This document shows, piece after piece, positions 10,101-42,800 of a DNA stretch of 64,000 nucleotides. The notes beneath the pieces are model-generated. The model worked only from the letters and a program-made list of their open reading frames with translations, was not told where the DNA came from and ran no database searches. Position 1 is the stretch's first letter. Each line of letters starts with the position of its first letter. The stretch comes from Cyanophora paradoxa CCMP329 (taxonomy: Eukaryota; Plantae; Glaucophyta), in NCBI GenBank assembly GCA_004431415.1, contig QPMI01000056.1:1-64000 (forward strand). The letters are read 5' to 3'. A program made the position numbers and the translations under genes.

Positions 10101-13100
10101 GCAAGTTCGCGCGCGTGCACGTATACGTATACGTAAAGACATAGAGCATGCTAGAGTGTACTCTCTCGATTCAGAGGGCGTCGAGACGCGCACGTCACGC
10201 ACCCATGAAGAACACTCCGTACGAGAAGTTTTTGCCAGCGCGTGCAACGATCTGGTCGGCAACGGTTTGCTTGGCGGTCTCGATCGAGTCGACCGTGTGC
10301 TCGAAATGGTCGGCCCCACAAAGACGGGGCGTTCGGAAGAATCGCCATCGAAAATCGTGCTCCAGCATTCGGACTGCGCAACGTTAAATTCGTTAATAAG
10401 AGCCGGTTTTGGAGAGTAACTCAATCTGGCGCACCAGCTTCTTCCTGTTGGAGCTCCCGCCCTCGAACGGGAGGAGCACTGCCCGCATGGGGGTCGACTT
10501 TGGAGCGGCGGCATCCGGCGACGTCGACGCCGCCGGCGCCCAGCCAAGCTTCGAAGTGATGTGCTCATGTACGTCTTCCCCGCGTTGCGGCTAATTCGAT
10601 GTTTCCGGAGAGTGAATTTCCGTCGAGCTCCTCAAAGGTGTAGAACGACTGGAAATCGCCCTGTATATTGGACGGCGCGCATCACCTACGGTGAGGCCCG
10701 GGGGCGCCGAAAATACAACGGAGCAAGCACGTACGAGAGAGCTCAATCTCGCCGGCCTCGCCCGATCGATGTTGATGATGTACTGGGTGTCCAGGCCTTT
10801 ATGTGCTTTTCTGCGCGGCCCGAGGCTCCTCAATCGTCTGCTGGAATGCGAGCATTTCCCCCATCCAAGAGAGATCGTACCTGGACGGGCGGCGCCCGCG
10901 CTCTCGTCGGGGCCGGCCGCTGCGCTCTCGTCGCGCGGACGCCGGCTCCCGACCGGGGCGACGCTCGACGACGACGCGTCCGTGCCGGAAGCCGATTCAA
11001 CGGTCTTGCCAACGTCGTGTAGGTTCCTCACGTTTTTACGGTAGATGTCGTATTTTTGGACGTCGACTTTGTCCGACCTCACGTCGAGGAAGCTCTTTTG
11101 GAGACCCTGTTTGGCCAAGGCCCTACTATCTTTGCTCACGCCGATGGATGTTTCCACGCGCGTCTCGAAAATTTCGCGAGGCTTCCGTCTCGAAGGGAAG
11201 TCTCGATGATGGTCTTGAGCGCGTGCGCCTCGTTCTTATTGAAGAGAAAGAGCCGAAGCATGATGATGACGGAGCCCTTTGCGCATCCCAGCAGCGCGAC
11301 ATCTTCCACCTTCAATCCGGATCGGCGAGCGGCGTCCTCGACGGCCGCGCGCATGCGACGCTCGATCTGCGAAAAAGGAACCTTAGAGATCTAGGGACAC
11401 ACAGAATGATTCTTGAGAGGTTGCCGTTGATGAATAAGAGGGAATCTATAGGATCGATTGGAACGCACCTGCTGGTGCACACTCGGTATTTCGATAAAGC
11501 GAGAAAAGCATCGCACATAACCTCCGGCGCACCCTCCCCATCACCAGCTTGTACACGACTCCATACCGCCCTGCAGCCGATTCATCTACGGCAGTATTCC
11601 GGTCAGGGCAGCGCGGCGCCACCACGGATCAAGATCCTTGGCCCGTACCCTCGATTTTCAACTCCTCCACCTCGACCCTGTTGAATTCGAATTCAAAATC
11701 AATACTTTTGCCGAGCTCCTCGGACAGCGCCTCCGGTTCGATCAACGGCTCGCATCTGCGCGGCGGTAAAGCCACATGAGGGCAGCGCTTCGGACTAAAT
11801 TCCGCAGGATCGCGCACCGCACTTCTCCCCCGCCCTCGCCGGGGGTCGGATCGGGGGCGGCCTCCGGAGTACCCGGCAGGCTCTCGACCACCCCGCTCGC
11901 GGTGTCGATCGGGTTGCCGGGCTCGCCCCCGTCGGCGGCCGCCGGCGATCGCTCGATCACGGGCACGACATCCGCCTTTTGCGGGATTTCCAATCCTGTG
12001 GTCGAGAATCCGTGTAGAAATAAGCACGAGGTAGCGGAACCGGACACGAAATAGTAATGTAATGGCGAGATCGCACGTGCGCAGGCCCTTTCCGGGTCGG
12101 CGTCGACGTCCAGCAGTCCCTTTTTGTTAGAAGTACCTGCAGAAGTGACCCAATTCACGCGTTTAATTTGTATGCGAGATCGCCGCAGAATGTATTTGAA
12201 ATGAATATAAGAGTGCTTACTGGCGGCCTCGGCCAGCTCCCACTCGGGGCGCTGCCGCAAAAGTTAACCACGGGAGCCCAGTTAGTTTTGGTGGCCCTCA
12301 GGCGCGTATTATCGACAGCTGTCGAAAGCACTCACCCATGGGCCGCGGTAGAGAATCATGGGGCCGTCGATCGCGGGCTGGAGCGCGCGGCCGCGGCTGA
12401 ACCGCGGGAGAAAAGCATGGTGTCGCCTGTGCTCGACTGGAGCGCGCGGGCGAGCAACCCGTGGAATCGAACGACTGGGTAAGATTCCAGATTGTGCTTG
12501 TCCACGTATTCGGACAGAATCTCATCCAGCTCCTTGGCGAATTGTGGAGTGAATCTGAAAGCGGGGACCGCCCCTTCCGGCCACGGCTCCTCGAGGGCGA
12601 CATTCTGCATAATGAACGGGTGAAAGTCGATCTCCTGCACCGGCAGTTCTCGAAAGATCTCTGCGGGGCGCTGAGAATCAGTTTGCAGGTTGATAAAAGA
12701 ATATCTGCACATGTACACGGGCGCACTTATCAATTTCCGGATCAGCAAATACGACAATGTAGGCGTCCGCCGCGGCGCCTTCTGGTCGACGTGACCAGGA
12801 AGCTCTCGCTCAATAATAGGGATCGCCAGCCTGACACGTTTGATTCCGGACACCGCGGGCTCGTTGATGGATTTGAGGACGTCAAGGGCACCGAGGATTG
12901 TGGAAATTCGGGACTCGTAACCGCTCAGATACTCCAAGGCCGTACCGGATGGTTCCATGTCGAGGCTTTCCCAGTGGAGCTTGCCAATTAATGATAACAA
13001 GCGCTTTGACACGGCGAAAATTCGGGACGCAAAGGCGTCCTCCAGCCCGAGGTGCTGGAGGATCTTCTCGATTAGCTCGTACGGCAGCCGCGGCCTGTCG

Positions 13101-13138
13101 ATGTGGAGGTCTTTGAACTCGTCGGCGGCTTCCTGCAC
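7155..13138 (-). CDS. Large multi-exon protein (possibly two genes) with an N-terminal F-box-like domain; remainder unrecognised; frameshifted
   Basis: The N-terminus RLPYELIEKILQHLGLEDAFASRIFAVSKRLLSLIGKLHW is F-box-like. Protein-like exons bounded by GT..AG continue down-strand (RPEWELAEAA, EPLIEPEALSEELGK, VEDVALLGCAKGSVIIMLRL, RQFQVDKHYTFLDVDKWD, NKILSMHTLFETLEPER*). Continuity as one gene is not proven. Confidence 0.5.
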
Positions 13139-14015
13139 GCCGTGCAGGTGAAATTCCGTCAGGTTTTCAACCTTTCACGGGCGCATGCGCAAGTTCGACC
13201 GGCGCGCACGCGTTCTGCATTCAGCGCAACCGCCGGCGAATCCTCCGCAGCGGTCGACATCGAAGCTCAATTGCAAGGTCTGTGGTACGGGCGCACGTCG
13301 ACGTCACGGTACTGATATCGATTCCGCCGCGGCCGGGCCGGGCTATCGGACGCGTGGGGGCGGTAACGTACTACTGCAAATAGATCGCGTGCGTATGCGT
13401 ATGCAACAAGATCCACGTCGCCGCACGTCGCGGAGGCGGGCAAGTCCGATGTTGGCCCACCGTGGCACCTCGGGCTCGAGCTCCTGGGCTCGCTATAGCC
13501 GAGGAATCGCGCGGCTGCGCTTTGCTCTAGCTATAGGTCTATCGGCCGTTGGACGCTTGCGCTATGTGCCGGCGGGCCGGGCATGCGCACCGGTCCGCAC
13601 CACCGGCCTCGTGCGCGAGTCCCCGAATCGAAACGCCAGAGCCGGGAGGGCCTGCGATCCGGTGTATTGCTAAATTTCGTGCTAGAATCGCCCACGAAAC
13701 TTCGGCTGTGAGGCAAACACGCACTGCGGCGCGTGTTGCAATTGGCGGGGATGGGGTACACACACACACACAGCTCTTTGGCCCAGTGGAAGTTACCGTG
13801 CACCGTACATGGACGCTTGTCGCACGTGCATATGCATGCAGCCTAAAACTACGAGTACGATATAGTCGAAGCGCGCGCGAGTAGAGCGGGCCCGCAGCCG
13901 GAGACCAGGACGCGCCCGCCCGATCGACGAGCCATGCCACCGCGGACAAGGTACTCGCCAACTCGTGTAAGGCTTTGAGACATAAGAAAGTCGACAAATA
14001 AAAGGAAAAAGCTAA

Positions 14016-15766: not shown

Positions 15767-15845
15767 CGCCGACGGCGCCGTACCCTTCCGACCCGTACCC
15801 GGTGAGCACCGGAAGCGTCGCCCGGCGCGTCTATCGAACGCGGCT

Positions 15846-18450
15846 ATGGCATTTGACTACTGGGGAATCAACTTGGGCGTCCCAACGTCCGTTCTGGGCA
15901 TCTCGACGCCCATCGCCGATCTGACCGATGACGAAGTCGAGGATGCATTCCGGCGAACGATGAGCAGCCTCAAAGACCCTGCCGCGCTTCAGGTGCGCCC
16001 CCCGCGCGTCGCCCGCGCGCCCTCCGCGGTCACCTGCGCATGCGCCCGGCCTGACCGCGCGCCGCTGGCCACGGGCCGACTTGCGCAGGGCCCAAACTTC
16101 CGCCCGGATCCGCAGCAGCTGAATGAATGGTTTTCGACGCTTCGGCAAGCCGCCACGTTCGGTGCGGGCCCGGCCCGCCCCCGCGCTCCCGCCGGCGCCT
16201 CGGCGGATCCCGCGGCTCAATCGTGCTCGCGCCGCCGCGCGCAGCATACCGGGTGCTGATATCGCCGGCCGTTCGCGCCGAGATGGCCAAGCACGGCCCG
16301 CGCACGCGCCTCGTCGCGGACATCAACCACCTGGCCGCCGAGACGCCCGAAGCCGTTTGCGAGGGCTGCGGCGTCGACGAGAGGACGAGCGAGCCCCGGC
16401 ACGTCTTCCGGAGACGGCGTACATCCAGAGATGCCGGAAGAGCGACGCGACCGTGTTGACGGCCACCGTGCTGGGGAACGCCGGCCCGCTGTGCGTTCCG
16501 CGCGCCGCTCTCGGGCCGACCGGCGTCCACCTGGAGAACGCGCCCTCGAGGCAAGCGGTCCGCCTCCGTCGCCCCGCCGCGACGCCCCCCGCCGCCGCCG
16601 ACCGCGAGCCTCGTCCCATCGTCCCGCCGCCTGCTGCGGCCCTCGCCTCGCCATCCGAGCCCCCCGCCGCGGCCTCTGGCGCCGCCGCCGCCGCACCCCG
16701 CACCCGCCGCTCGGCCTCCGCCGCCGCCGACCCAAAGAACCCGCCGTCACCTCCCTCGGGCGAAGAGGCGGAGCCCCCCGCACTCGCCCACGCCGAGCCG
16801 TCCGGGTGCGGACTCTTCCTTTGCGCCTACTTATACCTCGTTCCGAGGCGCGCGCAGCGAGATCAAAGTCGGGAAGACCGCGTTCCGCGAACGCACGAGC
16901 CTCAACCAGCTGCGCTCCAAGCTGGGCCTCCCGCAGGTGCCGCCGCGCGTGGCGCTCGCCGAATTTCAGCTGGAGACGGCTCGCGAGTGCGCGAAACGGG
17001 GCATCGACATCTCGCACTGGTCCGCGGCCCCGCCGGCCCCTTGTCCTTTTGCAAATCACGACCGTGCCCGCGCGCAGCCAAAACGCTCCGAAACTGCTGC
17101 CCGAAGGCGAGACGGCGCCGCCGGCAGAGGGCGACGGGTCTCCGAACTCGAAGCCGCCGGCGCCCGACAACGCTTCCAAACGGCCCAAGTGCGTGGGGGG
17201 CGGTTGCATCCTCTGCGCGAGTCCGCCGTGATCGCTACCGCAGGCGAAAGGCCGCCGAAATCGGCGCTTCGAGCAGCTCGTCGCCCGAGGAAGCCCCCGC
17301 GCCGTGCGCCCGCCCTTTTTCCGGACCGCCGCGCCGCCGGAGCTCGCGCTGACGTATCGTCCGAGCAGGAAACCGCTCGAGGACCGCAAGGAGTCCGATG
17401 AGACCGAGTCGCTCTGGACGTCGATCAAGGAGGAGGACGTCGTCGACCCGGCCGCCGCGTGCGAGATCTTTCGAACGAAACCTCGCCCAATATAGATGCT
17501 CGGCGCTGATGCGGGCTTTTTCAGGAAGACGGAGTGGGAGTCTTCGTCGTTCTTCCAGAAGAGCAGAGCGGCGCTGATCAAGTTCCTCCGGAAGCACTTT
17601 CCCACAACGGAACGACTCGCGGTGCTCAACCAGCTCTCCCTCGAAGGGATCAGGGCCCTCGTCGTTCTTCTGGCCCGCCGGCTTGGCTTCCCCGAGATCG
17701 ATGCGTGCGTCTCGGGGGCTTTGGGATCTCCCCCCGGGCGCCGCCGACGCATAGTCCGCAGCGAAAATCAAGTCGGGTCGAAGTTCTGGACGACTTCGGA
17801 AAGGACCGACGACGTCCTCGCCGATATGATGTGCGTTTTAGCTCCGCTGTGCCGGAACGTTCTCACGGGCCTCGTTTTGCATATATTCGCAGAAAGAATG
17901 CCATCGCGAAAGCGCAGGAGCAGGCGGTGGCCAGCATCAAGAAGGAACCCGGCATCACGCAGCCGGCGGAGCCGGGGCCCGGCGAGGAGCGCAAGGAGGA
18001 CGGCCCGCCCGCAACACCCGCGGCGTCCACATCTCCGCCAAAAGCTGCAGCGTGAGCGCGCCGTGCGGGGCTCTCCCACTCCGCCGCTTTCCGTCCAACC
18101 CGCGTTTCTTTGCGCGGCAGGTCCACGCCGAAGAGCAACGCCGGCGCCGGCGCCTCGGGCGAGAAGGATGAACAAGGCCCCCCGGGTCCGCAGCGCCCTT
18201 CCCTCTCCCGACCCTCCCGCTGCCCCAGGCGCCACCTGGCGATCCTTTGTGCCGACAGAGCGCCCCTCGAAACGCGTGGTTTCTGAGGTGGAGGAGGCCC
18301 TGCTGCGGAGAATTGAGGTCGGCGTTTCCCCGGCCCCACCGTTTTAACGTCATTTTAACGTGAATCCAGGCGGAGACAAACCCGGAGAAGAAGCGGAAAC
18401 TCGAGACCTTGCTCGAACAGACGCGAGAGATGGAGACAGGCAAGGAATAG
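15846..18450 (+). CDS. Multi-exon protein with an N-terminal J-domain-like (DnaJ-like) region carrying RPD in place of HPD
   Basis: ATG 15846. Spliced N-terminus SVLGISTPIADLTDDEVEDAFRRTMSSLKDPAALQ|GPNFRPDPQQLNEWFSTLRQAATF|AYRVLISPAVRAEM follows the J-domain pattern (VLG…E…AF/YR…xPD…F..L..AY.VL..P..R). Last exon AETNPEKKRKLE…GKE, TAG 18448-18450. Could be two genes. Confidence 0.55.
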
Positions 18451-18592: not shown

Positions 18593-20809
18593 ATGATGAC
18601 CGCCAGCCGACCGCTCGGGCCGAAAGCTGCTTGGGGGGGGGGTGGGGGTCGCGAGGGGCGCCGGCGGGGGACTGGGGGCTACGGGCGGGGCCGAGGCCGC
18701 CTTGTGCACGCCATATTCGCGACCGCTGAGGGCTCTGGACGGATTCCGAACCGAACTTTCTCCTCGCGATCGCTCGAGCGCGCAGATCGTCTGGTGTCCT
18801 CGGCGTCCGGGGCAAGGTCCGAGTACTGCTTCGGACGGCCCGGCCGGTCCGTGTACTCGACCGGTCCGCACCCTCGCCCCCTCCCCCTCGCGCCCGGGCC
18901 CCTGACGGGCGCCCGCAGAACCCTTCAGGTGCGCCGAGCTCGTCGCGACGAGGCGGTACGGTTACCGTTCCTACGGTCCCGTCCGCTGGAGGGGTCAGAT
19001 CCTGCACGTGCGCTCCGGGCCCGCGCGGGGCGCCCTCCTCCATGCGCGCCCGCCCCGACGGCCCCGCCCGCAGCTCCCGTTCGGCATCGTCCCCGAGGGC
19101 ATGACGGGCCCGCCGGGCCGGATGGCGGAGCACTTTGGCTCGAAGCTGGGGCTGAGCCCGCCGCCCGTTGACCTGCTCGCCCTCCGCGCGATCGAGGGGG
19201 CCCTGCTCGGGCGCCCGCACGGCCCGCCGCACGCCTCGGCGCTGGCGGCGTGGGCCACGTCCCCCGAGCGGCACGTCGCGCTCCCCTGCAACCTCCTCGG
19301 GGGCGGCGTCGACTCGCGTTACATCCGGAGGCAGCGGGCCGAGGTGCCGCCGCCGCCCCCGCCCCGCGCCGCCCTCTCACGCGCGCGCCGCAGGGCAAGT
19401 TCGCCGCCTACGTCGCGCCGCTCCCGCCGGGCTGCTCCACGGAGGACGAGGCGCGGCACGACTACGTCCTGGACCGCGGGGCGCAGACGTGCATCTCCCT
19501 GAGCGGCGTCCTCGCCGCCGTCCACCTTCCCGGCCTCTTCCGCGAGGGCGCCGGGATCGAGCGGGTCGCCGCCGCCGTCGCCTGCGCCTCCACGGCCTTC
19601 AACTTTTCCGTCCGCCGCAGCACCATGTACAGCGAGGCCCGGGTGCGGGCCGCCGTCCTCTTTCCGCCCGCGGCCGCGACGTGAACGCCGAGGCAGGACA
19701 AGAAGCTGCTCGACGAGGCGCGCGCGGCGGCCGAGGCGGCGCTCCGGACGGGACGGCTCGACGTGATGCGGGAGAAGCTCGCCGGGCGACCCGGGGGCAA
19801 GAGGAAGGCGCCCGCGCCGCCCCCGCGCCTCGCAGCGGCGCGCCCGCCGCGGAGGGCTGCCGCGGGCAAGGCCGATAAATCGAAAAAGCGCGGGCCGCGG
19901 ATCGCCACCGGCTTCCAACGAACCCAGGGCGCGTCTGTCCCGATTCCGGTCCGCGGCCCGCGCCCCGCCCCGGCCGCCCGCGCGGGCGAGCCGACCCGCT
20001 CTCCCGCGCGCAGATCTCTCTCAACCCGCAGTACGGCTCGGACACGAACGCGAACCGGCGGCTGCACCTCGCGAACGGGTACTTTGCCGGTGTGCTCGAG
20101 TACCTGTTCCCGGCCCTCTGCGCCTTTGACGTCAAGGCCGGCTGCGACATGGCGGAGATCGCGCTTCGCCTTCTCGATCGGCAACCGTACAATTACGGTC
20201 CGCCATCGCGCGCCGTCCCGCCCTCTCGGGCCCGACGCGGGTTGCGGGCGCGCAGGGTTCTGGTCGATGCAATGGATGAATCCGCCGGAAACGCGAGCTC
20301 GTTTTAAAAATAACCCACCTTTGGATGCCGACACTTTTTCTCCAGGATCGCGACGTCCCACCGGGACAAGAACGACGCGCAAGAGGCCTACGCCGCTCTC
20401 GTCTACTTTCACCCCGACGGCGCCCGGGACCGGCGGCTGCATCGTCTCCGTTTCCCCACCCTCGGCATCTCGCTCGACGTGCGACACGGGGACGTCGTCT
20501 TTATCCGGGTGAGCGCCCCGGGGCCCCCGCCGGCTCTCTGCCCCCGTCTTCCCGGCCGACGACGACCCGATGCGCCTCCAGGGGCACCTGCTCGAGCACG
20601 AGGTCGTGGTGGACGGGGAGACGGATCCCAGGTTCGATGCTTTGGCGGGCGCCCCCCCCCGGCCGCCCTGATCCCGCTACCGCACGCGCAGGTATTGCAT
20701 CGTGTTTACCCTCGGCAAGGACCTCAAAGTCGACGCCGATCCCGCCGGCGAGGCGAGAAAGGGTGTGTCTGCCTCGTCCGACAGCGACTCTTCGAATTCG
20801 GAAGGCTAG
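18593..20809 (+). CDS. TET/JBP-family 2-oxoglutarate/Fe(II)-dependent dioxygenase (predicted nucleic-acid base oxidase)
   Basis: Spliced C-terminus: FWSMQWMNPPET|IATSHRDKNDAQEAYAALVYF…LRFPTLGISLDVRHGDVVFIR|GHLLEHEV…DP R|YCIVF…*. HxD starts at 20359, the distal His is at 20597, the 2OG-binding Arg spans a splice junction, and the stop is 20807-20809. Start position is approximate. Confidence 0.85.
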
Positions 20810-20889
20810 CTCCGCTGTGTAGTTTGACTTTTAAAAATGCAATAACATCAAAAATAATTAGCTTCAAGGATGGGAAGCTTGTGGCATGT

Positions 20890-21675
20890 CACTGATCATG
20901 ATCATGAGTCACTTTAACGTTTATAGCACGTATACTAGTTAAAATAATCATATCGATATCAACATGGCATGTCAATGAGTCACTAATTAATATAAGTAAT
21001 GATCGGATCATGATCGCTTGAGCTCGGCTGCATACAGCTGCAGCTGCAGCGTAGTATCATGATCATAATTATATAATCATGACTCAGTGAATTCGAAAGC
21101 CTTCAATTGAAGGCTTTATAAATAACTTAGTAAGGCATATAGATATCATAGTATCATGATCATAATCATGATACTATTAAAGCCTTCAAGGCTTCAAGGC
21201 CTTACTCAAATCATAGTATCATGATCATGATCATAATCATGAATCATGAAAGCCTTCAAGGCTTCAAGGCCTCAGTCATGTATATATTATGATAGATATC
21301 ATGCATGATCATAGTATCATGATCATGATCACGAAAATCTTCATGATCAAGGCCGGGCTAGAACTTTTGGAAGGCATTTTGTCATATAGGCAGACTTTTG
21401 GATATAGCTATCATAGTATCATGATCATGATAATCATCATGAATTCGAAAGCCTTCAAGGCTCCAAGACCTTGGGCCTAGCTATAGTACCTTATCATGAA
21501 AGCCTAATTATATATAAGTATACGCGTGCCGCAGTGCGTATGCAACCTATCATAGTATAAGCTTCAAAATTCGAATTCATGATACGTTACATGTACATGT
21601 ACATATCCGCGGCCGATGATCCGATGATCGATATCATGATATCGGTCATGATCATCAAAGTACTAGTACTAGTAC
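20890..21675. repeat. AT-rich low-complexity spacer built from ATCATGAT palindromes and AAGCCTTCAAGGC repeats
   Basis: Repeated TATCATAGTATCATGATCAT and GAAAGCCTTCAAGGCTTCAAGGCC blocks, with a sharp GC drop relative to both flanks. Confidence 0.85.
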
Positions 21676-21677
21676 TA

Positions 21678-22037
21678 CCCCGCACTAGGCCCGTAGTAGG
21701 TCCTTTGCGAGCGAGCTGTGGTGCAAACGTTTATTTCGACAGACGGAGAGGGTTGGGAACTTAGCCCGCCCCCGCCGCCGCGCCCCGCCCTCGAGGTAAG
21801 ATTGCGCTCTTCGGCTCGTTCGAAAAGTGTCTTAGGCGGACGGTCCCGACGGACGGGCCGGCGGGAGCGCAGTGCCGCCGGGCCGCAGCGCTCGTCTGCC
21901 GCCCCCCTCCCCCGCGCCCGAAGGCCCCGCACTAGGTCCTTTGCGAGCGAGCTGTGGTGCAAACGTTTATTTCGACAGACGGAGAGGGTTGGGAACTTAG
22001 CCCGGCCCCCGCCGCCGCGCCCAGCCCTTGAGGTACG
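21678..22037. repeat. Direct repeat, ~236-bp period (~1.5 copies)
   Basis: TCCTTTGCGAGCGAGCTGTGGTGCAAACGTTTATTTCGACAGACGGAGAGGGTTGGGAACTTAGCCC occurs at 21701 and 21937. Confidence 0.9.
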
Positions 22038-23510
22038 AGGTGATCGTAGCCGGCGGCGATGAAAGACTCGTGCACCAGGGCCCTGCGAGGGCCCGGGCGC
22101 GGGCTGGGGGCCCCGGATCCGCGGGACCGCCCGGCGGCGCGAGGCAGGAGGCGCACCTGTACGCGAGACGGGCCCCGCGGGTGCCGGGCGTCCCTCTAGC
22201 GGCCCGCGGGAGCGCTGCGCGCGGGGCACTCGTTAGCTCGGGCGGATTCCGGGAGGGCGGGCGGGCCCGCCGTCGGCCGACGGTACAGCTTTGCACCTGG
22301 GGTCGGCACGTCGCACTCTTGCGCAGCGCTGCTCGTCGGCGGCGACATCCTGCAGCCGGGCGCGGCGCGGGCCGGGGATGCCGCGCGCGCGAGGCGGACT
22401 AGGCGCCGCGGACGACGGCGATGGCCAGCGATCCCTCCGTGCAATCTCTGCCCCAAGAGAGCATAGCTAAGCATCTACGGGGCGCGCGGCGGGGCGGGGG
22501 CGGGAGCGCACCACTTGCGCGGGGCCGGGTCTCGGCCTAGGCCCGCCGGACCGCGACCACGGGCGTGAAAGAGGTTCCCGGGCCCCACCACGACCCGCGG
22601 GAGGCCTCCTTGCACGCCGCCGGGCCGGCCACGCCGCTCGATCGATCCGAGCAGAGACGGGCGGCCCACCGGCACCGCCCCCGACTCGGGAGGGAGCTAA
22701 AGAGCGCGGAGCCGCACGGGCGGCGCGGCAGACGGCGCGCGCGGGTCGCGAGGTCCTGGGGCGCCCTGCGGACGGGTGAGCGACGGCAGACGCTTAGAAC
22801 CGATTGCCGTACGAACCCCGGTTGCATTGGGCGCAAACTTAACGAGAATTTACGCGGCGCCGCTCGCCCCGCAGAGTTTAGTATGTACCCCCTCGACGGA
22901 GGCTGCCGCGGAGCGAGGCGAGCGGCGCTCGGATGCGGCCCCCGCGCGGCGTCGAGGGACTAGAAATCGTGCGCTACGCCGTACTTGCGAGCGCTGGAGC
23001 GCTCCGCGCGCGCGTTTCGGTGCGCGAGGGGCGCGGATCAAATTGCTCTCTTCCGCGGACGGCGCGACGTAGCGCGAGCCCGTGCAGCCGGAGAGGTCCA
23101 AAACCGGGATCCATACCGTGGGATCACTAGCAGCTCGTCGCCCACGCGCGCGCGGGGCCGCGCCGGGCGACCAGGCGCACTCCACCACGGGACCCTCTGA
23201 GAGGCCGAGACGCCCGATCGCGGGCCGACGAGCGGCTCCATAAGGTGGGGCGTGCACTACGATACCGCACGCCGCCGCGCCGGGCCGGACGGCGCCGGGT
23301 CGGTCCGCACTAGGTCCCGGGCCCCGGGTTCGGGGCATCGGCCTGACGGTGCCGCGCGGTACCGGCCCACGAATACGATAGCGTGCACTCTACACGAGAG
23401 ATTCCGGGAGCGGGTACCGAGCCGAGCGCGTTTTCCTTCTAGCCAGGAGTCATTTTACCAGAGTATAACGCGATCGAGCTATATTGTTAGCCTAAGTACT
23501 TAGAGGCTAG

Positions 23511-25374
23511 TTAGAGCATCATGTTGTTGACTCGGAAGGAGACGGGAAGCCCCCTGAGCCCCTGCCCGCGAACCAGCCGCCGAGGATCGAGCGCGCGCGC
23601 TTTGCGAGCGCCTCCTCGACCTGGGCGCACTCCGGAAATCTGAAAATCTGGAAGCGGAGGCCAGTTCGACGGTCACGCCCCTCAGGTTACACGCGGACGC
23701 GGACGCAGAGGAGGAGGAAGAAGAAGAAGGGACGGGAGGGCCAGAAGCTCGCGGAAGGAGCCGAGCTTCCCTTCCCGGCGCCCGGGGCCCCCTCGTCCTC
23801 CGCGATGGAGTCGGCGTAGGATCTCAGGACGACGCGCTCGAGCCTGGGGCCGCCCCGCGCGACCTCCTGGGAGTGAAATGAGTTCAAGGGGCGGGGCAGA
23901 CGTGCAAAAGGGGTACGTATACGGACCCGCAGGACCTCAGCGGAGGCCGGTCCGCCCTCGATCACGAACTCGCGGAGGACGGGGCGCGCGGCGTGGATCA
24001 GGGGTACGAGGCCGGCGACCTCTGCCGCCGACTCGGACTCGGGACGGCCGTGCACATGTACCCCCAGGGAGAGCCGCTCGAGGTGCAGGGACCGAACCCG
24101 AAGACCTCAGGCCAGGAGGGGGGGCGACTCAGGCCAGGAGGGGTATGGGGAGGGGGAAGAAGAAGAAGAGGATGTCGTACCCGGACCTCGAGCTCCTCCA
24201 AGAAGCGCAGGCGAACGACAGAGGCGAGCTCCAATGCGCCGACGCCGGCGGGCGGGAGGCGCGGGGCCCGGACGCAGTCGGGTTGGAGCGCGTCGAGTGC
24301 CCCCGCCAGGCCCTCCGAAGAGGCGACAGCGACCCGGAGCTCCTCCAGCTGGAACAGGCCCGCGAGCTGGCGGAGGGCGGCGCCGTCCCGCACCCGTCAC
24401 GAGAGCTTCGTCAGGCCCGGCCAGACCCGCGCCAGCATCGACTGCGGTGTCCAGAGTCAGACGCGTGCGCGCGCTTCGAATCGGAGGATCCGGAAGGGCG
24501 GCGAACCGTGTGCTCTGCCGAGAGTGCGACAGCATCGTGCGCGGACGAGGGGGACGGGGGAGCGAGCGGACGGGGAGCGGGCGGAGCGCTGCCAGCAGGC
24601 CGCGAACGACGGCCTCGGGGGGCGGTACCGCGGCGTGCTCGCGTGCCACAGGACCGAGCCAGTGCTCCAGCTGCCATCGATGCGGACGGACTCCGGCGGC
24701 GCGGGCACCGCCGACAGGGCCTCCAGTATTTCTGCGAAAGGCGCGCGCCGAGCGAGCGTCAGATCACGGCCTGCGGTCGAGAATGGCACGCGCACGTCCG
24801 AGAGCGCACCTGTGAGGGCAATGGCGGCGTGGACGCTCGCTCCCTTGAACTCCGTCGCGCGAGATCCAATTGCAGCCCGGGTTCTCTCCATCTTAGGTGT
24901 GCGAAATCTGTAGCACGCTGCGCCGACGACGAGCATGCGGCAGCCCCGCATCGCTCCGCTCCGCGCGCGATCCGTGACCCGATCCAAAAGCTCCTCGTAC
25001 TCGCTGATGCGCTCTTGCAGGCTGCCCTCCTCACTGGGCTCGACCCGCAGCTGCTCCCAGTGCACGCCGCGCACGAGCTGGCGGAACCGCCTGTCCACCG
25101 CCCACAGCCGGCACTCCTCGTCGCCTCCGTCGCCTCCAGCTCGCTGAAGATACGCTGCACGAGCTCGTCGGGCAGCCGCGCGAAGTGAGTGACTGCGTCC
25201 GCGTTCCCCTTGCCACTCGCCTCCGGCTCCGCTGTTGAGGGAGGGTTCGTCGTGCACGTGGCATCCTGCCATTCGTACTCGCTTGCTGAGAATGGCGGAC
25301 CTGCGAGGCAGTGCGAGCTCCTCCTCGCGATAGCGAGCGCGCTTCTCGTGCCGCTGATCGGCCATGAGGGCCAT
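23511..25374 (-). CDS. F-box protein (host family, LRR-like C-terminal region); contains frameshift(s)
   Basis: HFARLPDELVQRIFSELEATEA/EECRLWAVDRRFRQLVRGVHWEQLRVEP is nearly identical to the 48307 gene. The C-terminus SILGGWF…PVSFRVNNMML* (TAA 23513-23511) matches that paralog's IIRGWF…PISFKVN. Confidence 0.75.
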
Positions 25375-33897: not shown

Positions 33898-36800
33898 ATG
33901 GATAAGCGGGTCCACGAGGAGGGAGGCGTGGGGAAGGTTCGCTTCTACATGCCCTTAAGATCACATGATCCGATGATCACGCGCACGGGCTTCGCTCATT
34001 GCGAAATCGCTTGCAATCGCTCCGCAGAATGAAGACAGGGTAAGCGCGCCGGCCCGGCACCCTAGGCCTAGGCCCAGGCTTTAAATTTGCGGAACCTGGA
34101 GCTGCGCCGGCATCCGCCGCGCGGCCTTGGCGCAGCCCGCCCTCACTGACTTCTTCGGATTCAGCTATGGCGCGCGATGTATGCGGTGCAAGACCACCTG
34201 GTGCCTCGGCCCGCAATGCCTTAGCCCGGCCGCTACGCATGCATAGGCCATAGCGGTTTCTCGGGCTCTTTAATTTACTATATCTAGATCTCTGCGCATG
34301 AGTAAATTTTTTAGGGCGGGGCTCGTCCGCGATCCTAGGTCTAGACTAATCCTCGCGGGGCCCCCCAGACGGAGATCAGCGACAGGAGGTACAAGAACCG
34401 GGTCCGCGCGCTCGAGCTCCCCGCGATCCCCGCCCTAGGCCTCGCGATCGGCCTCGGCCGGCGCCGCGGCCGCCCGAGCTCACGAGGGCCGTTGGACCGT
34501 CGGACGCACGCGCGCGCGCCCCAAGCTCACGAGGGCGCACGCGCTCTAAATCCTTACGTCCTCTTTAAACCTTCTCTCTTAATTACTTCTCTCTTACTTT
34601 CTGTTTAACGAACCTAACAAGACGAGGGCGGCCGCGGGCGCGCAGAGGGAACAGGTCCTCTCCGTCCTCTTCAGCTTCATCGACGGCATCCAGCTCCTCG
34701 CGCTCTGCATAGGGAGGCACTCCTGTGCGTGCTTCTAGATCTACTTTTTACTTAGGAAGCTTGTGATTAGATCTCGCGTGGCCGCGGCGCCGGCTGCTGT
34801 GCCCCTCCCCTCTTTTCCCGACATGTACACGGGCCCACGATCGCGATCGGCCGCGCAGCATTCGACTCCGGAGTGTACCGGCCCATCATCCGCTATGTAG
34901 ACCTCCACATCGTGCGCCTCGGGCCCGCTTTGAACTTCTCCCTCCCGCGACGTCGACGAGCACCCAATATTAATCAAATTTAACGCTCGATTCCCGTTTC
35001 ACGCTTGAATTGATTCGTTTCGGTCCGGCCGGGCCCGCCGCAGCTCTTCACGCAGCACAACTACGACAAGTTCACGAACGTCCTCTGGGCCTACTTCATC
35101 GCTTTTCTCGTAGCCATCCTCGCCTTTCTCTATCGCCTCGTCCGGCAATCCGTGCGTAAATAAATCGGGCGGCGGCGCACCTGTCGAGCTCGAGATCGAC
35201 CGCCCACGCCCCGCCTCAGAAGGGCAAGCCGGCGCGGACGGTCCAAATCTACAGCGTTATGCTCATGCGGGTATGCAGCTCATGATGATGATAATATATA
35301 CAGCCCGGTTGATGCAAATTAAATGTCTCGGCCCAGGCGATCCTCTTCGCCCTCTTCATCCCCTTCGTGAAGCTATTCGTCACGATCTTCGCGTGCGGGC
35401 GGGACGACTGGTCGGGCGAGGCGGCCCCGCCCCTCGTGCAGTGCCTCTCCCTCACGTGGACCGTGTATGCCGCCATCGCGGGGGGCGTGCTCGGCGTCTT
35501 CGTGGTGAGCGCCGGCAATAAATTAGAGCGCGGTGATGATGTATTTTGATTCCGGCTGATTTCGCGCAGCCCTTTGCCGTCGGGTACTTCTTCCTGTTCC
35601 GGCACAACCACATCGGCTGCCCCGACTTCGAGTCCCGCCCGCACGGCCGCTTCCACGCGCCCTACGCCGTCGCCCGCCTCGCGATGATCGCCGCGACGGC
35701 CGCCACGCCCGGCGAGTCGACCCTCGTCCAGATCGTGTACCTCGCCTGCACGGGCCTGCCCCTCGTCGCGCTGCTGAAGACGCTGCCGAGCTACCGCCGC
35801 TTCATGAACTACGTCAGGGGCGGCTTCCTCGCCGCCGCCTTCCACCTCAGCGTCGCCTCCCTCATCATGTCCGGCATCGGCGTCCAGGTTCGTTAGCTTC
35901 AGCTCTGATTTAATCTCTTTAATTTAGCCGTCTAGCTTTATAAAGAGCGCTTAAAGTCCAAGCTAAACTCAGCTCCTGATTTTACAATTTGATCGCGCAG
36001 GGCGACCCGAAGCGCGTGCTCGGCTCCTCGGTGCTGATCGCCCTCGCCGGCCTCGCCTACGCGGCCGGGGTCACCGCCGTCTGGGTCGCCTACTGGCGCG
36101 TCGAAGCGCTCGCGAACCGCGAAGCACCGGTCAGTCCGTCCGCAAAAGCTTATAATCAAGCTTGTATATAATTAGCTTGATTATAAGTGTGCAATTGCAA
36201 GTCTAGATCTCGCGTACTAGTCAGTACTAGTCCTCAAAAGCTTAAGTGTGCAAGTCTCGCGTTCGGTCGCTCGCTCACACTCGCTTTCATTTCTTACGAT
36301 TAGGAATTCGAGTCGCCGTACATCGCGGAGCTCTGCTCGCGGACGATCCTGCAGCGGGAGGCGCACCCCGGCGACGAGTCGAAGCAGAAGGCGGAGGCCC
36401 TCCTCCGGGCGGGCATCGAGCAGTTCCCCACCAGCGCCTACATCCAGGCGCGCCTTATTGGCTTAGCTTACATCGTATTAGCTTCTGGGCCTTCAACTTC
36501 GCGCAGCTCCAGTACGCGCACTTCCTGAAGGCGTTCGCGAACAACGCCAACGCCGCCGCGCAAGAAGTCCGCAACTGGTGCGCCGCAAACTATAAAGTGA
36601 ACTGAATGCGCCTCCAATTTCGATCAAATACTAATCCGACAACTCGGCAGCTGGCGGAAGGAGCCGGCGATCGATTTCCGGTACGAGGCGCACTCGACGC
36701 GGCTCTTCTGGGAGCGCCAGTCGCAGCTGCACGGGGGCGACAAGGCCGGCGCCGCCGCGGCCGACCTCTTCAGCAGCGTCGACAACAAGCGCATGTACGA

Positions 36801-39800
36801 CAAGGCCCGCCAAGGACGTGCGTCGGCGTCTCGATCACCACTGCGCGCGCGCCGACGCCGAGTCGAACGGCTGCTGACGTCGACGCAGACACGAGGACGC
36901 TGAAGCTGATCCGGGCCTTCTGGGTCTCCCTCGCCAGGAAGAACCTGCACGTGGCCGGCGCCCTCGACGACGTGCCGCGCCGCCTCGCGGACATCGATTC
37001 GCACGTCAAGGACGCCGAGGTCGCCTACACGTCCCTCCTCAAGCGTGCGCCCGCGCGCGCGGCTTTACATTTGTGCACGTGCACGTTTCTCAAGCGCGCC
37101 GACGTCCAGACCTGAACAAATCTGCAGCTGACAGTCAACGTTGGTTCGTGCAGGGTTCTCGAGCAGCAAGATCCTCCTTCGGGCGTACGCTTCGTTCCTG
37201 GATCAGTGTATGGTGCGCAGTATATATGTAGCACATGTGCAAGTACAGTCGCCCCATGGCCATGGATTGCAATTGCAATGGCGAGGTTCATGCACGCCGT
37301 CTAATTTCGAGCCTGACACGCGCGCCTTCGCCAGAACGACAAGGCGAGGTCGCAGCTCTACTTCATGAAGGCGGACGAGGTGGAGGAGAACGAGTCCAAG
37401 ACGGCGTCGCTCTCGGCGTCGCAGTCGCAGAGCCAGTCGCAGAGCCAGTCGGCCGGCGGCGGCGGCGGCGCCGGCGCCCAGTCGGCCTCCGAGTCGCAGT
37501 CGCAGTCGGCCTCGTCGGGGGCCTCGTCGTCGGCCGCCGCCAAGAAGCGCGCCATCGCGAAGGAGCTCAAGCTGCGCTCCAACGAGACGCGGGCCGTCAC
37601 GAAGCTCTTCTGGGGCGTCGTCCTCGGCCTCCTCTTCCTGGGAGCCGTCTCCTGCTCCATGTTCATCGGCGCGCTTCAAAGCTTATATTTAACGGATGCT
37701 TAAAGCTTATAAAGCGAATGCTTCAAAGCTTAGCTATAACGAATGCTTCAACGCTTAGCGACAAGCTTATATATATTAAAGCTTAACGAATGCTTTCCAT
37801 TCTCGACGTTGTGCTTATAGTTGTTTCGTTCAATTTCGCAGTGGTGAAGATCATGTTCGTGCAGTACGACCAGGCCCTCTCACGCCTCCGGATCATGTCC
37901 TTCCAGCGCCGCCGCGTCGTGGTGCGCTGGCGCCGGCGCCCTCCTTCGAATTCGAATTCGTGACCGCCGAACACGCCCCAAGTGCTCAATATCTTATCTA
38001 GATGCTTCGCCGTCATGATCATCGAAATCGCGATCGCCCCAATTGCCTGTGCTTCAAGATCTAGATGCTTCGCGTCATCTAGATCTGCTTTCTCCGAGAT
38101 CTAGATCTAGATGCTTCAACATTGGATTACGGTGCTGACGGCGAGCTCGAACAGGCGGTGAACAACATGGTGCGGTGGATGAACCTCGGGGCCATGCGGA
38201 ACGACTCGGCCCTCTTCAAGCACTGGGCGACCGAGGTCGGCATCCGCTCCAAGGACTTCTCCCACGACCACCACGGCCTCTAGTGCGCGTTGCTGTTAAT
38301 TGTAATGTTTTAAGCCCTCCAGTACTAGTTTAGGTGCATCGAAAGATCAATTAATGTTGCGATTGGGCGCGCAGCTTCGGGTTTCCGGATACGGGCATCC
38401 CCGCGAGCTCGGACGCGAAGATCAAGGAGTTCTGGGGCAAGCCCACGGTCCACACCGTCAAGCACTACCCGGGCCCGCCCGTGTACGAGACGCAGAACAA
38501 CGAGCCGATCTGGGACGCCGGCAACGAAATGTGAGCGCCGCTGCGTTTCGCGTCGAATTCCCCGGCCCATTGCAACCTTCGCGATTATTTGCGCTGACGT
38601 TCGGGCTCACTTCAGCATGATCGCGTGCCGGCGCATCAGTCTCATGACCGAACATCAGTTCAAGGGTCTGCGCGCCCTCTGTCCACGCCGCTCTCGCCCC
38701 GCCGTTCGTGTTAATTCTAATCTGGTCAAATTCGCAGACATTCACATCGTCAAGGAGGCCAAATTCGTCTTCCAGAACGCATTATTCGGCGTGCGCACAC
38801 GCTTGCTGCGAGTTAACGGCGCAAAACTTCCATGCTGATCTCGCCGCGCGGCGCAGATTCTGGATGGGTTCAATGAATTCACCGTACTCTTCGAGGAAGA
38901 GGCGCGCGCGCTCGCTCGCGGCCCCGCTCCCTTTCGAAATATATTAGCACATATTCAATTCCCGGCAATATTTCTAACGAGCCGCCGTGCGCCTCCGCTC
39001 GCGCAGCTTATGGCGACGATCGAGAAGGCGAAGTGGATCATCCTCGCCGTCTGCCTCGTCGCCCAGCTCCTCCTCATCGGAGAGGCCCTCTTCGTCTTCC
39101 GGTGCGCAGATCGAAAGCATTTCCCCAAAGAAAGCCAGCTGATCATGACAGAAACCTGATGCGATTTATTTCATTGCAGGCCGAGCTTCAAGGCGGTGCG
39201 GCTGACGATGCGCGGCGTGTCGGACATCCTCATCGGAATGCCCCGCGCCCGTGCGCATTTCCGAAGTTCCACATTTCCACTCATTAAAATGTTCGATTCG
39301 CGGTCTCACGTCGGGTCTCCGCAGTGGTGAAGCAAGTCGCTAAGCACTACAGCAAGGCGCAAAAACGCGAAAGGGAGAAGTGCGCTCTTAAGCTTACGCT
39401 GCCTTCTGTCTGTCTGTCTGTCTGTCTGTCTTCTAAATTGACGTTTCTTCTTGTTTCCGCGCAGCGAGGGCGGCTCCGACAGCGAGGATTCGCAGTCGCG
39501 CTCGGGAAGCAGCGACGAGGAGCGGGGCTCCGGCTCCAACTCGTCGGACGGCGACCGCGAGAAGCGCAGCGAGGCAGGCGAGGAGGAGGAGGAAGGGCGC
39601 CGACGCCATGGCGGCGGCAGCAGCAAGCGGCGCGTCACCCGCGGGAAGAACGCCCGCTCCGATCGCGACGACGACGAGGACGCGGAGACGGAGAAGGCCG
39701 AGACGTCCGCCGGGGAGGAGGAGGGCGAGGAGGACGCGAAGAAGAAGAAGCGGAAGCACCGGAGGGCGTCCATCGCGAAGGACGAGAAGCGGAAGGGCAA

Positions 39801-42800
39801 GGACCGCAAGAGGGGCGGCAAGGGCCGCGGCCGCTCGGACTCGGAGGACGCGACGGCAACGGCGACAGAGGCCGAGCCGGAGAAGGCGAGCGAATTCGAA
39901 CTAGAAATTTCCTTGATTTCGGGGTCGGCTGAGAAATGTGTTCGACGTCGACAGGTCCCCGTCAAGGCAGAGCCTGCGCTGGACCCGGTCGCCGAGGAGC
40001 GCCCGCGGTCTGCCCTGTCCGCCGGCAGCGCCGGCGCCGCCGCCGCCGCCGACGCCGCGAATTCGAAGAAGAGTTCGAGCTTGCAGCTCGTGCCGGTGCG
40101 CTCGAGCTCGGCCACTGAAGCTTAAGCGGAATGAACGCGGCTGAACGCGGCTTTAGAATTTATATAATATCTATCTATCTATCTATCTATCTAATAATAC
40201 CTAATACCTAAAGCCACTGAAGCGGAATGGAAGGCGGACTCACTGAAGCGGAATGGAAGGCGGACTCGCTGAAGCGGCTGAACGCGGCTTTAGAATAATA
40301 TCTATCTGTCTATCTATCTATCTACTGATAATACCTAATACCTAAAGTACCGTAAGCAGGTTCCGGAGCAGGTGCCGGCCGTGCTGATGAAGCTGCACGC
40401 GAAGCTCGACGACGAGGGCTTCGGATCCGGAGAGCTCCTCGCGATCGAGGGCGAGGGCGACTGCAACGGGGCGACGCGCGAGACGTACGCTCCAGCCCGG
40501 CCCGCGGCCCGGCGGCCGGGCCAGATCTCACAGGCTAGGACGCGCGTCTGTTTGCGCGTGCGTGCGCAGGACGCCGAGCTTCCAGCACCTGGCGCTGGCG
40601 TCGTCCGGCAGCCGCGGCGAGCTCGACCACGAGTCGCCGAAGGCCATGGCCGGCCCCGCCTCGGACCGGTCGACCGGCAGCGCCGTGGTGAGCTCGCACA
40701 TGCAAAAGGCGCTTCGCTTTATTTGATTTCTCATGCAATCGAATCGACGGCAGCTCCTGCACACGCTGAACGTCGAGCACGACGTAGACCCGAGCGCGGG
40801 CGAGGTGAAAATCGTGACCTCGAGCTCTACGGGCGATCGCGAGCTCGAGACGACGGGCCGCAAGGCGAATTCGAAGAGCGGCACCCTCAAAGAACTCGGT
40901 GCTCCGGATCCGTTTGCGTTCTAAACATTTCTAGTAAGCTTCTATCTGAGCGTCAGCGTTTTCGTAATCTAGGACTCAACGATCTGGACGACCTCTTCGA
41001 CAAGATACGGGAGGGGAAGGACGACGGGAAGCCGCTCCGCAAGGGCGACCCCGACGCCAAGACCGCGCCCAAGAAGAAGGCGCGCTTGGCAATCCAACTT
41101 GGAAACCTGTTTGCACAGTATACTTTTTCATGTCTGATCCTCAGCAGGGCAAGAAGTACGAGGCGGAGTCGGACGGGAGCAGCGACGCCTCCTCGCAGCG
41201 CGGCCGCGGGGGGCGCGCCGGCGCAGGCGCCGGGCGCAGCTCGAACAGCCTCGGCCTCGGCCTCCAGATGCAGCTGCGGCCGCCCCGCAGGCGCTCGTCG
41301 GTCGAGACGGGCGCCGTGCAAGGCGCCGCGGCGACGGGAATCCTGCGGAAGCAGATGTCTCTTGAGGAGTCGAAGATGCTGGATCCGGAGGCGACAAAGG
41401 GCGCGGCGGCCGCGGAGGCGGACGCCGAGGAGTCGAAGAAAGAAGCCGCCGCCAAGGCCGAGAAGGAGGCGGCCGACAGAAAGGCACGCTCTCTCTCTCT
41501 GGGCTTGCCGGTCTAGAATTCGAAGCAGGCAGGCTCATTATAAATAATTAACGCCCCCCTCGCACGGATACCACAGAAGGAGGAAGAGGAGAGGAAGAGC
41601 AAGAAGAAGAAGGGCAAGGCGGAGGAGGGGGAGAGCCGCGGGCCCGACGTCCTCGACCTCCTCACCCGCAAGTGTAAGCGAGCTGAAGCTTATATAATTA
41701 AGCCCTAGTCATTAGTCACTAGATAGATATATAGGTGCGCATTCGGCCCTTCGATTTAACTTTGATTTCCGTTCCAGATATGCTCTCGTTCATTTTGATC
41801 GGGGGCATCTTCATCGCCAACTTCCTCATCTGCTACTTCATCCTGGACGCCGGCAAGAACTTCGCCTTCGAGATCAACCTCGCCGGCCGCGTGCGCCCCC
41901 GCCCGGAAATCTAGATCTAATTATAAAAGATCTTCTAATTGCCCCGCGTGCGAAGATCTAATTATAAAAGATCTAGTAGAAAAATCGGTCAACGTCCAAT
42001 AGAAGATCTCGCGACAGCTCGCCGTGCACGTGTCTTTGTCGAATGTTTGTTTCTGCAGCGGCGCTCGATCGCGCGCGAGGTGGCCTTCTACACGCGCGAG
42101 CTCTACATCAACGACGGCATCTTCCTGCCCCGCGCCGAGATCTTCCACCGACTCGTCCAGAAGGCGCGCGCGCCCATGTTCACGCAACTTGTGTATATCA
42201 AGCTTCGTCCACACCGTTACCTAACTTGGCTCCACGTTGCATTAATCAACAGGTGGCGCTCTTCAAGGAGATCCACCAGGGCCTCAAGTCGGGCGACCCG
42301 GCGCACAACGTCTACGGCGCGGACGGCCGCAACAAGGCGAGTGCAAGAGAGAAAGAGCTTGACGCTCTGAAACATATACGACGGATCGCGTCCTGAATCG
42401 CGCGCGCGCGCGCCACAGGAGCTGGACCGGATCATGTACGACGCGCCGCAGTGCCTTCGCCTCGCGGCGGACAAGTGCAACAGGGACCGCGTCCACGACA
42501 TCGAGCTCGTCGACAAGTGCGCTCTCGCAGCTGCTCGCGCTAATCCGGAGAAGAAGAACTCCGATTTCATCAACGTTTCACACTTTTTCTCACGCGCGCG
42601 CGCGCGCATGCGCAGCGGGCTGGACGCGCTGGTGATGGGCGTGCTGGACCTCGTGATCGCGATCATGCAGGAGACCACGCCCGACCTGCTGCTGACGGGC
42701 AAGGAGGACGAGTCCATCGTCGTGGTGATTTGATTTCGGTTTCTTCGCGTTATATATAGTTCTATTTCGTGGGGCTCTTATATCATATATAATTGGCTTC

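Follow-up and report, generated by a model that had tools for sequence, protein, structure and literature searches.

A divergent TET/JBP-like domain, probably reached through a GC-AG intron, in a multi-copy gene family of the glaucophyte Cyanophora paradoxa

The gene and its GC-AG intron

The DNA considered here, positions 1 to 64,000 of contig QPMI01000056.1 of the glaucophyte Cyanophora paradoxa CCMP329 (hereafter the window, meaning the whole stretch of 64,000 nucleotides), is protist sequence with a G+C content of 60–74%, and carries on its forward strand a multi-exon gene whose last exons encode a divergent TET/JBP-like domain linked to the rest through one GC-AG intron. The gene itself is already annotated: the EukProt model tig00000215_g18531.t1 (511 amino acids; P0013 in what follows) contains all of the exons read in the window at 100% identity, and maps onto 11 exons between 18596 and 20809 with every junction as read, the GC-AG one included. 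It carries neither a Pfam label nor a gene name, and what is new here is the assignment to a family, the extent of that family in Cyanophora and a probable extension of the gene at its 5' end. The original prediction had described the domain as hidden from the open reading frame (ORF) track; this is so in the sense that no ORF in the mechanical list contains the HxD motif, but not in the sense of the gene having been missed, as it stands in the public annotation.

Exons 1 (18596–18641, with a doubtful start ATG at 18596), 2 (18786–18863) and 5 (19394–19642) are placed by exact mapping of P0013, and exons 3 (18919–19007), with a conserved YGY.S.GPVRW block, and 4 (19074–19343), with a conserved N-terminal module, by mapping together with the paralogs. 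Exon 6 (19697–19948) encodes a helix followed by a Lys/Arg/Pro-rich linker and has its donor at 19949 as in the public model; an alternative donor at 19937 was ruled out, as both the public model and the paralogs support 19949. The catalytic domain begins in exon 7 (20014–20197) with invariant Asn residues, an LEYL block and a low-confidence helical prediction, and continues in exon 8 (20256–20292), which comprises GFWSMQWMNPPE plus two nucleotides (nt) of a Thr codon. After the 53-nt GC-AG intron (20293–20345), exon 9 (20346–20508) supplies H407 (20359–20361), D409 (20365–20367), D412 (20374–20376) and the GDVVF block; a 73-nt GT-AG intron (20509–20581) then separates it from exon 10 (20582–20631), which holds the distal His, H462 (20597–20599), and a 60-nt GT-AG intron (20632–20691) leads to exon 11 (20692–20809), with YCIVF, an acidic Ser-rich tail and the stop codon TAG (20807–20809). 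R473 is encoded by a split codon (20630–20631 plus 20692). All 11 exons are open, the introns are 50–77 nt long, and the G+C content at third codon positions (GC3) is 0.73–0.98 in every exon, well above that at second positions (GC2), which is a coding signature. This bias, the exact mapping of P0013 and the gap-free alignment of the paralogs across three junctions together indicate that the exon set is more than a chance assembly.

The linker exon, used as query in a word search, led to EukProt proteins with names of the form tig..._g....t1, and an exhaustive HMMER search with the catalytic exon among 1.84 billion proteins returned six family representatives (E ≤ 2.2e-8), five from Cyanophora paradoxa and one from a run assembly, with two further weak matches to unrelated repeat proteins. 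Further members came from a third search. The family amounts to about 14 gene models on 14 contigs in at least seven sequence lineages, with 64–95% identity in the core, and none of its public proteins carries a domain label. One of the models, P0017 on another contig, is a twin of P0013 and differs from it only in the first two exons, to about residue 25 of P0013.

That removing 20293–20345 fuses WMNPPET in frame to IATSHRD was claimed in the original prediction and is borne out both by a re-reading of the sequence and by the P0013 junction: exon 8 ends ...CCG GAA AC at 20292, the G at 20346 completes the Thr codon, and exon 9 reads ATC GCG ACG TCC CAC CGG GAC (IATSHRD), continuing to IATSHRDKND...LRFPTLG...GDVVFIR. 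The intron starts GCGAGC and ends in a pyrimidine run plus CAG, and so has the GC donor, AG acceptor, pyrimidine tract and frame restoration upon removal of a U2-type GC-AG intron; such introns occur normally as a minority among U2 introns. The two further introns foreseen downstream are likewise found, both of them GT-AG, yielding FIR/GHLLEH and DP(R)/YCIVF and with them the distal His and the Arg. All GT, GC and AT donors were combined with all AG and AC acceptors that lie between the codons for the Asn of WMN and the His of HRD; none of the GT-AG pairs bridged the two frames. Two GC-AG solutions did, of which 20292/20346 alone gives the eight-residue spacing from Asn to His that is present in nine of nine complete paralogs. 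The nine complete models align without gaps across all three junctions, and at the level of gene models the junction on which the original prediction hung is in use: it occurs in two public models with identical downstream protein, P0013 and P0017, and its equivalent in seven further paralog models. Public Cyanophora models were built with BRAKER1/Augustus trained on RNA sequencing (RNA-seq) data (PMC6704402), which makes their use of the junction indirect evidence for splicing. We propose that the catalytic exon is reached only by splicing of this intron, and infer that its GC donor is spliced in RNA.

The same donor is the reason to consider that the window copy may be non-functional, either because the GC donor stops splicing and shifts the frame before the HxD motif, or because the copy is a decaying member of a multi-copy family. 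The donor context, AAC/GCGAGC, is weak, and the intron is oddly AT-rich, with a G+C content of 45% compared with 77–90% for the six neighbouring introns measured in the gene. Two relatives appear to read through the equivalent intron, P0002 with Asn-Val-Ser where the window has Asn-Ala-Ser, and P0007 with Glu-Trp-Cys-Val at the intron start; as these read-through codons imply GT at the position of the window's GC, both probably have a GT donor. The site would thus be a conserved donor, at which the window's GC is a T-to-C variant. Some family members are, moreover, degenerate or wrongly modelled: the models P0001 and P0002, truncated or frameshifted, both enter the equivalent intron and end shortly after, P0007 (from run assembly ERR10034898) continues in frame across two introns, and P0008 represents one lineage that has lost HxD, the segment being replaced by a Gly/Ala-rich stretch. 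Against decay, however, stand the 11 open exons with their strong GC3 signature, a core that is 95% identical to that of P0012 with its catalytic residues intact, the normal standing of GC-AG introns already mentioned, and the choice of this junction by the RNA-seq-trained models at two loci. We therefore regard a non-functional window copy as quite improbable.

Evidence for a TET/JBP assignment

The family reading of the original prediction is supported, at modest significance: Tet_JBP is the single 2-oxoglutarate (2OG) family of Pfam to be matched, and a TET enzyme is the top match in the Protein Data Bank (PDB). Searched exon by exon, the catalytic exon alone matches Pfam (Tet_JBP positions 87–133 of 164, E 0.2). 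With whole proteins, Tet_JBP is the best or near-best match in 10 of the 12 family members scanned (E 2.3e-4 to 0.1; 12–21 bits, with the best paralog at 20.9), the two without it being the truncated P0007 and the HxD-less P0008, and when only the domain is searched it is found in nine of 11 members, including all nine complete ones, with a best E of 2.6e-5. For P0013 itself the score is 13.8 bits over the whole protein and 16.1 bits (E 0.007) over the domain alone. The comparison against rival profiles that the original prediction had called for also comes out in favour of Tet_JBP, as none of the AlkB, 2OG-FeII_Oxy or P4H families is listed for the 11 domain sequences at E up to 10, in a listing of weak matches that is incomplete since HMMER filters drop most of those above about 0.1.

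A second line of evidence comes from the PDB. A profile made from the gap-free 99-column core alignment of the nine paralogs (A4), searched against 177,635 PDB sequences, has as its top match Naegleria Tet1 (NgTet1; 4lt5_A) at a borderline E of 0.047. The alignment places HRD, D412, GDVVF and H462 in register opposite HKD, D234, GDVLF and the distal His, respectively. A single paralog used as query gives the same NgTet1 alignment. It was trimming to the gap-free core that brought NgTet1 to the top; profiles that included the helical N-terminal part and the tails (A1 and A3) gave only chance matches to the p97 N domain.

These chance matches bear on the idea that the motif set is coincidental and that the C-terminal region is a small non-catalytic beta-barrel, p97-N-like or SH3-like, with no metal role. 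Profiles do give chance-level matches to the p97/Cdc48 N domain (E 0.03–0.8), and eight members match MLVIN_C (best E 0.0015) through the GDVVFIRG...YCIV stretch, but both sets of matches span only about 30 residues and exclude HxD. A coincidence would furthermore leave unexplained the invariance of H407, D409, D412, H462 and R473 at 64–95% identity and their register with NgTet1, and we consider it highly improbable.

Indeed, N398, H407, D409, D412, H462 and R473 are all invariant in the nine complete paralogs. The HxD...H triad H407/D409/H462 falls on HKD and on the distal His in NgTet1, and D412, three residues after the Asp of HxD, on NgTet1 D234. R473, the candidate for the 2OG-binding Arg that is expected about 10–15 residues after the distal His in TET/JBP enzymes, lies 11 residues after H462 and is followed by an invariant Tyr-Cys. 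The NgTet1 alignment stops before it, and the Pfam Tet_JBP matches of several paralogs extend to profile position 159–160 of 164. The original prediction had presented N...HxD..D/L.FP.LG/GD/H/RxxxVF as a typical TET/JBP pattern; NgTet1, the one solved TET aligned, matches it in register at HxD, at the following Asp, at GDV.F and at the distal His, but has no counterpart of the L.FP.LG part.

Structure prediction offers a third line. The domain model of AlphaFold2 comprises two helices followed by seven predicted strands, at low confidence, and the top 50 Foldseek matches listed for it consist mostly of cupins or double-stranded beta-helix folds, with the fungal CcTet first in both probability and identity (probability 0.98–0.99, 27–29% identity over 72–74 columns, E 0.04–0.08), all of which counts as a weak hint given the low-confidence query model. 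Here the alternative to be weighed is that the protein belongs with those 2OG/Fe(II) dioxygenases of double-stranded beta-helix type that lie outside TET/JBP, whether AlkB-like, prolyl-hydroxylase-like or of an undescribed clade; it would then act on an alkylated base, on a protein or on a small molecule. Bacterial prolyl 4-hydroxylases and FTO appear among the Foldseek matches at E 0.03–0.09, similar to CcTet, and the Pfam scores lie below the Tet_JBP cut-off. Yet it is CcTet that has the highest Foldseek probability and sequence identity, the rival Pfam families are absent from the incomplete listing at E up to 10 for all 11 members whereas Tet_JBP is found in nine, and the sequence-profile matches in the PDB are headed by a TET, to whose base-contacting Asp D412 aligns. 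A dioxygenase from outside TET/JBP is therefore unlikely.

Several results weigh against a TET/JBP assignment, beyond the weak donor discussed above. No member reaches the Pfam gathering cut-off for PF12851 Tet_JBP (34.9 bits), which is an operational threshold rather than a biochemical feature, and the matches are confined to the C-terminal half of the profile, about positions 84–160 of 164. The PDB yields no match to the window gene's own core as a single sequence, nor to exons 7 and 9 in phmmer searches. The AlphaFold2 models have a mean predicted local distance difference test (pLDDT) score of 40.5 at full length and 52.1 for the domain, and no Foldseek match reaches E 0.001 or better. Finally, the family is isolated and its alignment shallow, with no relative found outside Cyanophora save in the one run assembly, and the paralogs are not independent of each other, so that their repeated matches cannot be multiplied. 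Of the other searches, NCBIfam gave no match, PHROGs gave only phrog_24024 (function unknown; E 0.018–0.6), a word search with the catalytic exon found no match in the 106–338 amino acid range, and IMG/VR viral contigs and JGI metagenome contigs contained no relatives.

Taken together, three different methods point, modestly, to TET/JBP and none is decisive alone; we judge homology to TET/JBP likely. The fuller reading that we favour, and consider nearly as likely, is that these exons form the 3' half of a glaucophyte nuclear gene encoding a divergent, lineage-specific Fe(II)/2OG dioxygenase of the TET/JBP branch.

A probable 5' half of the gene and the surrounding sequence

The original prediction had the gene begin at 18593, at the earlier ATG of a tandem pair whose second member (18596) opens the public model. 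This start is probably not the real N-terminus, and the gene is probably about twice as long, judging from upstream exons that match the long paralogs. The N-terminal residues of P0013, which are just those in which its twin P0017 differs, correspond to internal stretches of the longer paralogs, and tblastn finds the N-terminal halves of P0005 (923 amino acids) and P0012 (1010 amino acids) in the same order on the forward strand at 15831–17924: P0005 residues 1–80 match 15831–16160, P0012 residues 37–91 match 16244–16408 with 47% identity, and P0005 residues 306–489 match 17337–17924. Both proteins also align to the annotated exons, and a coding GC3 signature is present at 16247–17660. The link at 17.9–18.6 kb is low-complexity and its similarity to the long paralogs is weak. 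The public 511-residue model and the 18593 start thus probably cover the 3' half only and lack the 5' half, and on balance we favour a single gene that is about 5 kb long and begins near 15.8 kb. A start at the ATG at 19101, suggested by P0001, is ruled out by conserved exons upstream in the longer paralogs.

Two details of this region may be recorded. At 18440–18450 a conserved-looking exon ends ...ACAG, after which come GCAAGG, similar to a consensus GC donor, and an in-frame stop; a second GC-AG intron might link the 5' half, although the phases tried did not close. In addition, the frames of P0013 and P0017 diverge just after a run of ten Gs at about 18633–18642, which points to a homopolymer of different length in the two contigs or to an error of assembly.

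Directly 3' of the stop codon lies a 0.9-kb island (20810–21700) of 37% G+C in a region of roughly 70% G+C. Degenerate ATCATGATCATGA-type units make up this island, in which a 35-nt family occurs eight times, a tandem period of 70 nt is seen and there are several short palindromes; the island may be what is left of a repeat, or else an intergenic or terminator region. Beyond it are two direct copies of about 110 nt (21690–21801 and 21926–22038), 89–96% identical and 236 nt apart, with no Rfam match; transfer RNA (tRNA) and Rfam scans of the window likewise gave none. No convincing terminal inverted repeats flank the gene, and the neighbouring exons sampled by Pfam include no transposase, reverse transcriptase or integrase, and gave F-box matches only. 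F-box-type exons lie at 12995–13174 on the reverse strand (Pfam F-box, E 9e-4), at 24919–25143 on the reverse strand, and at 48412–48621 on the forward strand (Pfam F-box-like, E 5.5e-6). Those at 24.9 kb and 48.4 kb share a nearly identical stretch of 30 residues, so that the window holds paralogous F-box genes. A long multi-exon gene at 34600–42730 on the forward strand has many hydrophobic, membrane-like exons and acidic or lysine-rich linkers, and the one exon of it that was scanned has no Pfam match.

Proposed function and comparison with known systems

The fold, the binding of metal and cosubstrate, the activity and the substrate of the protein are all predicted from sequence. In the mechanism that we envisage, H407, D409 and H462 would hold Fe(II) as a facial triad, R473 would anchor the distal carboxylate of 2OG, and D412 would read a 5-methylpyrimidine flipped out of a nucleic acid, the methyl group of which would then be hydroxylated. 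The D412 counterpart in NgTet1, D234, hydrogen-bonds N4 of the flipped 5-methylcytosine (5mC) and corresponds to N1387 of TET2 (PMC4678852), and D213 of JBP1 is conserved with it (PMC11804724); since an Asp occupies this position in both a 5mC-preferring enzyme and a thymine hydroxylase, it does not decide the substrate. The likeliest substrate would be 5mC, with thymine as the alternative, because C. paradoxa has DNMT1, DNMT3 and 32% CpG methylation that falls mainly on repeats and on silent genes (PMC12344493). There is no CpG depletion as a trace of methylation, the observed/expected ratio being 1.1–1.3.

What gives the family its interest is that C. paradoxa is the reference glaucophyte, with a heavily CpG-methylated genome and both DNMT1 and DNMT3 (PMC12344493), and that a search of one full-text library found no paper connecting TET/JBP enzymes with Cyanophora or with glaucophytes. 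Were the family active, it would be the second case, besides Chlamydomonas, of an algal lineage in Archaeplastida with expanded 5-methylpyrimidine oxidases. Enzymatic methyl sequencing (EM-seq) cannot tell 5-hydroxymethylcytosine (5hmC) from 5mC, and as EM-seq and bisulfite sequencing both merge the two, methylome maps obtained by either would then need to be re-read. The locus also exposes two flaws in the annotation of this genome, in that some family models (P0001 and P0002) end just before the catalytic motif, at the intron, and the model of the window locus probably lacks its 5' half.

Among characterized enzymes, NgTet1 (PDB 4LT5, 5CG8) is alike in that its H-x-D-x-x-D motif, GDV.F..G strand and distal His align in register with those of the family across some 70 residues. 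The Cyanophora core appears compact, like that of NgTet1, and there is no Pfam match suggesting a Cys-rich region or a large insert of the kind found in metazoan TETs. NgTet1, however, has only 321 amino acids, whereas the Cyanophora proteins have 500–1000 and include a large conserved N-terminal region without Pfam matches. Against Pfam PF12851 (Tet_JBP, the 2OGFeDO superfamily oxygenase domain) the matches fall at consistent coordinates and leave the first half of the profile unmatched. CcTet of Coprinopsis cinerea (PDB 7VPN, 8JKK) is alike by Foldseek, on the low-confidence model. In fungi, TET/JBP genes are linked to KDZ transposons (cited in bioRxiv 10.1101/2022.06.16.496473); no such link is seen at the window gene.

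CMD1 of Chlamydomonas uses vitamin C to make 5-glyceryl-methylcytosine, whereas in the Cyanophora family the invariant Arg suggests 2OG, and no direct sequence match to CMD1 was obtained. The resemblance is one of family form: CMD1 and the TET/JBP paralogs of Chlamydomonas, like the Cyanophora family, represent an algal, multi-copy, lineage-specific expansion. Chlamydomonas has at least 12 TET/JBP copies, most of them inside transposons, and TET/JBP expansions are transposon-linked both there and in basidiomycetes (bioRxiv 10.1101/2022.06.16.496473). It is tempting to speculate, although we consider it unlikely, that glaucophytes possess their own expanded TET/JBP-like clade, fused to a large conserved N-terminal module, which could oxidise or otherwise derivatise 5mC and which escaped domain annotation because its scores lie below the Pfam cut-off. 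The product of such enzymes might be something other than 5hmC, and they could serve an anti-silencing function of mobile or virus-derived DNA, as has been proposed for TET/JBP genes carried by transposons in Chlamydomonas and in fungi.

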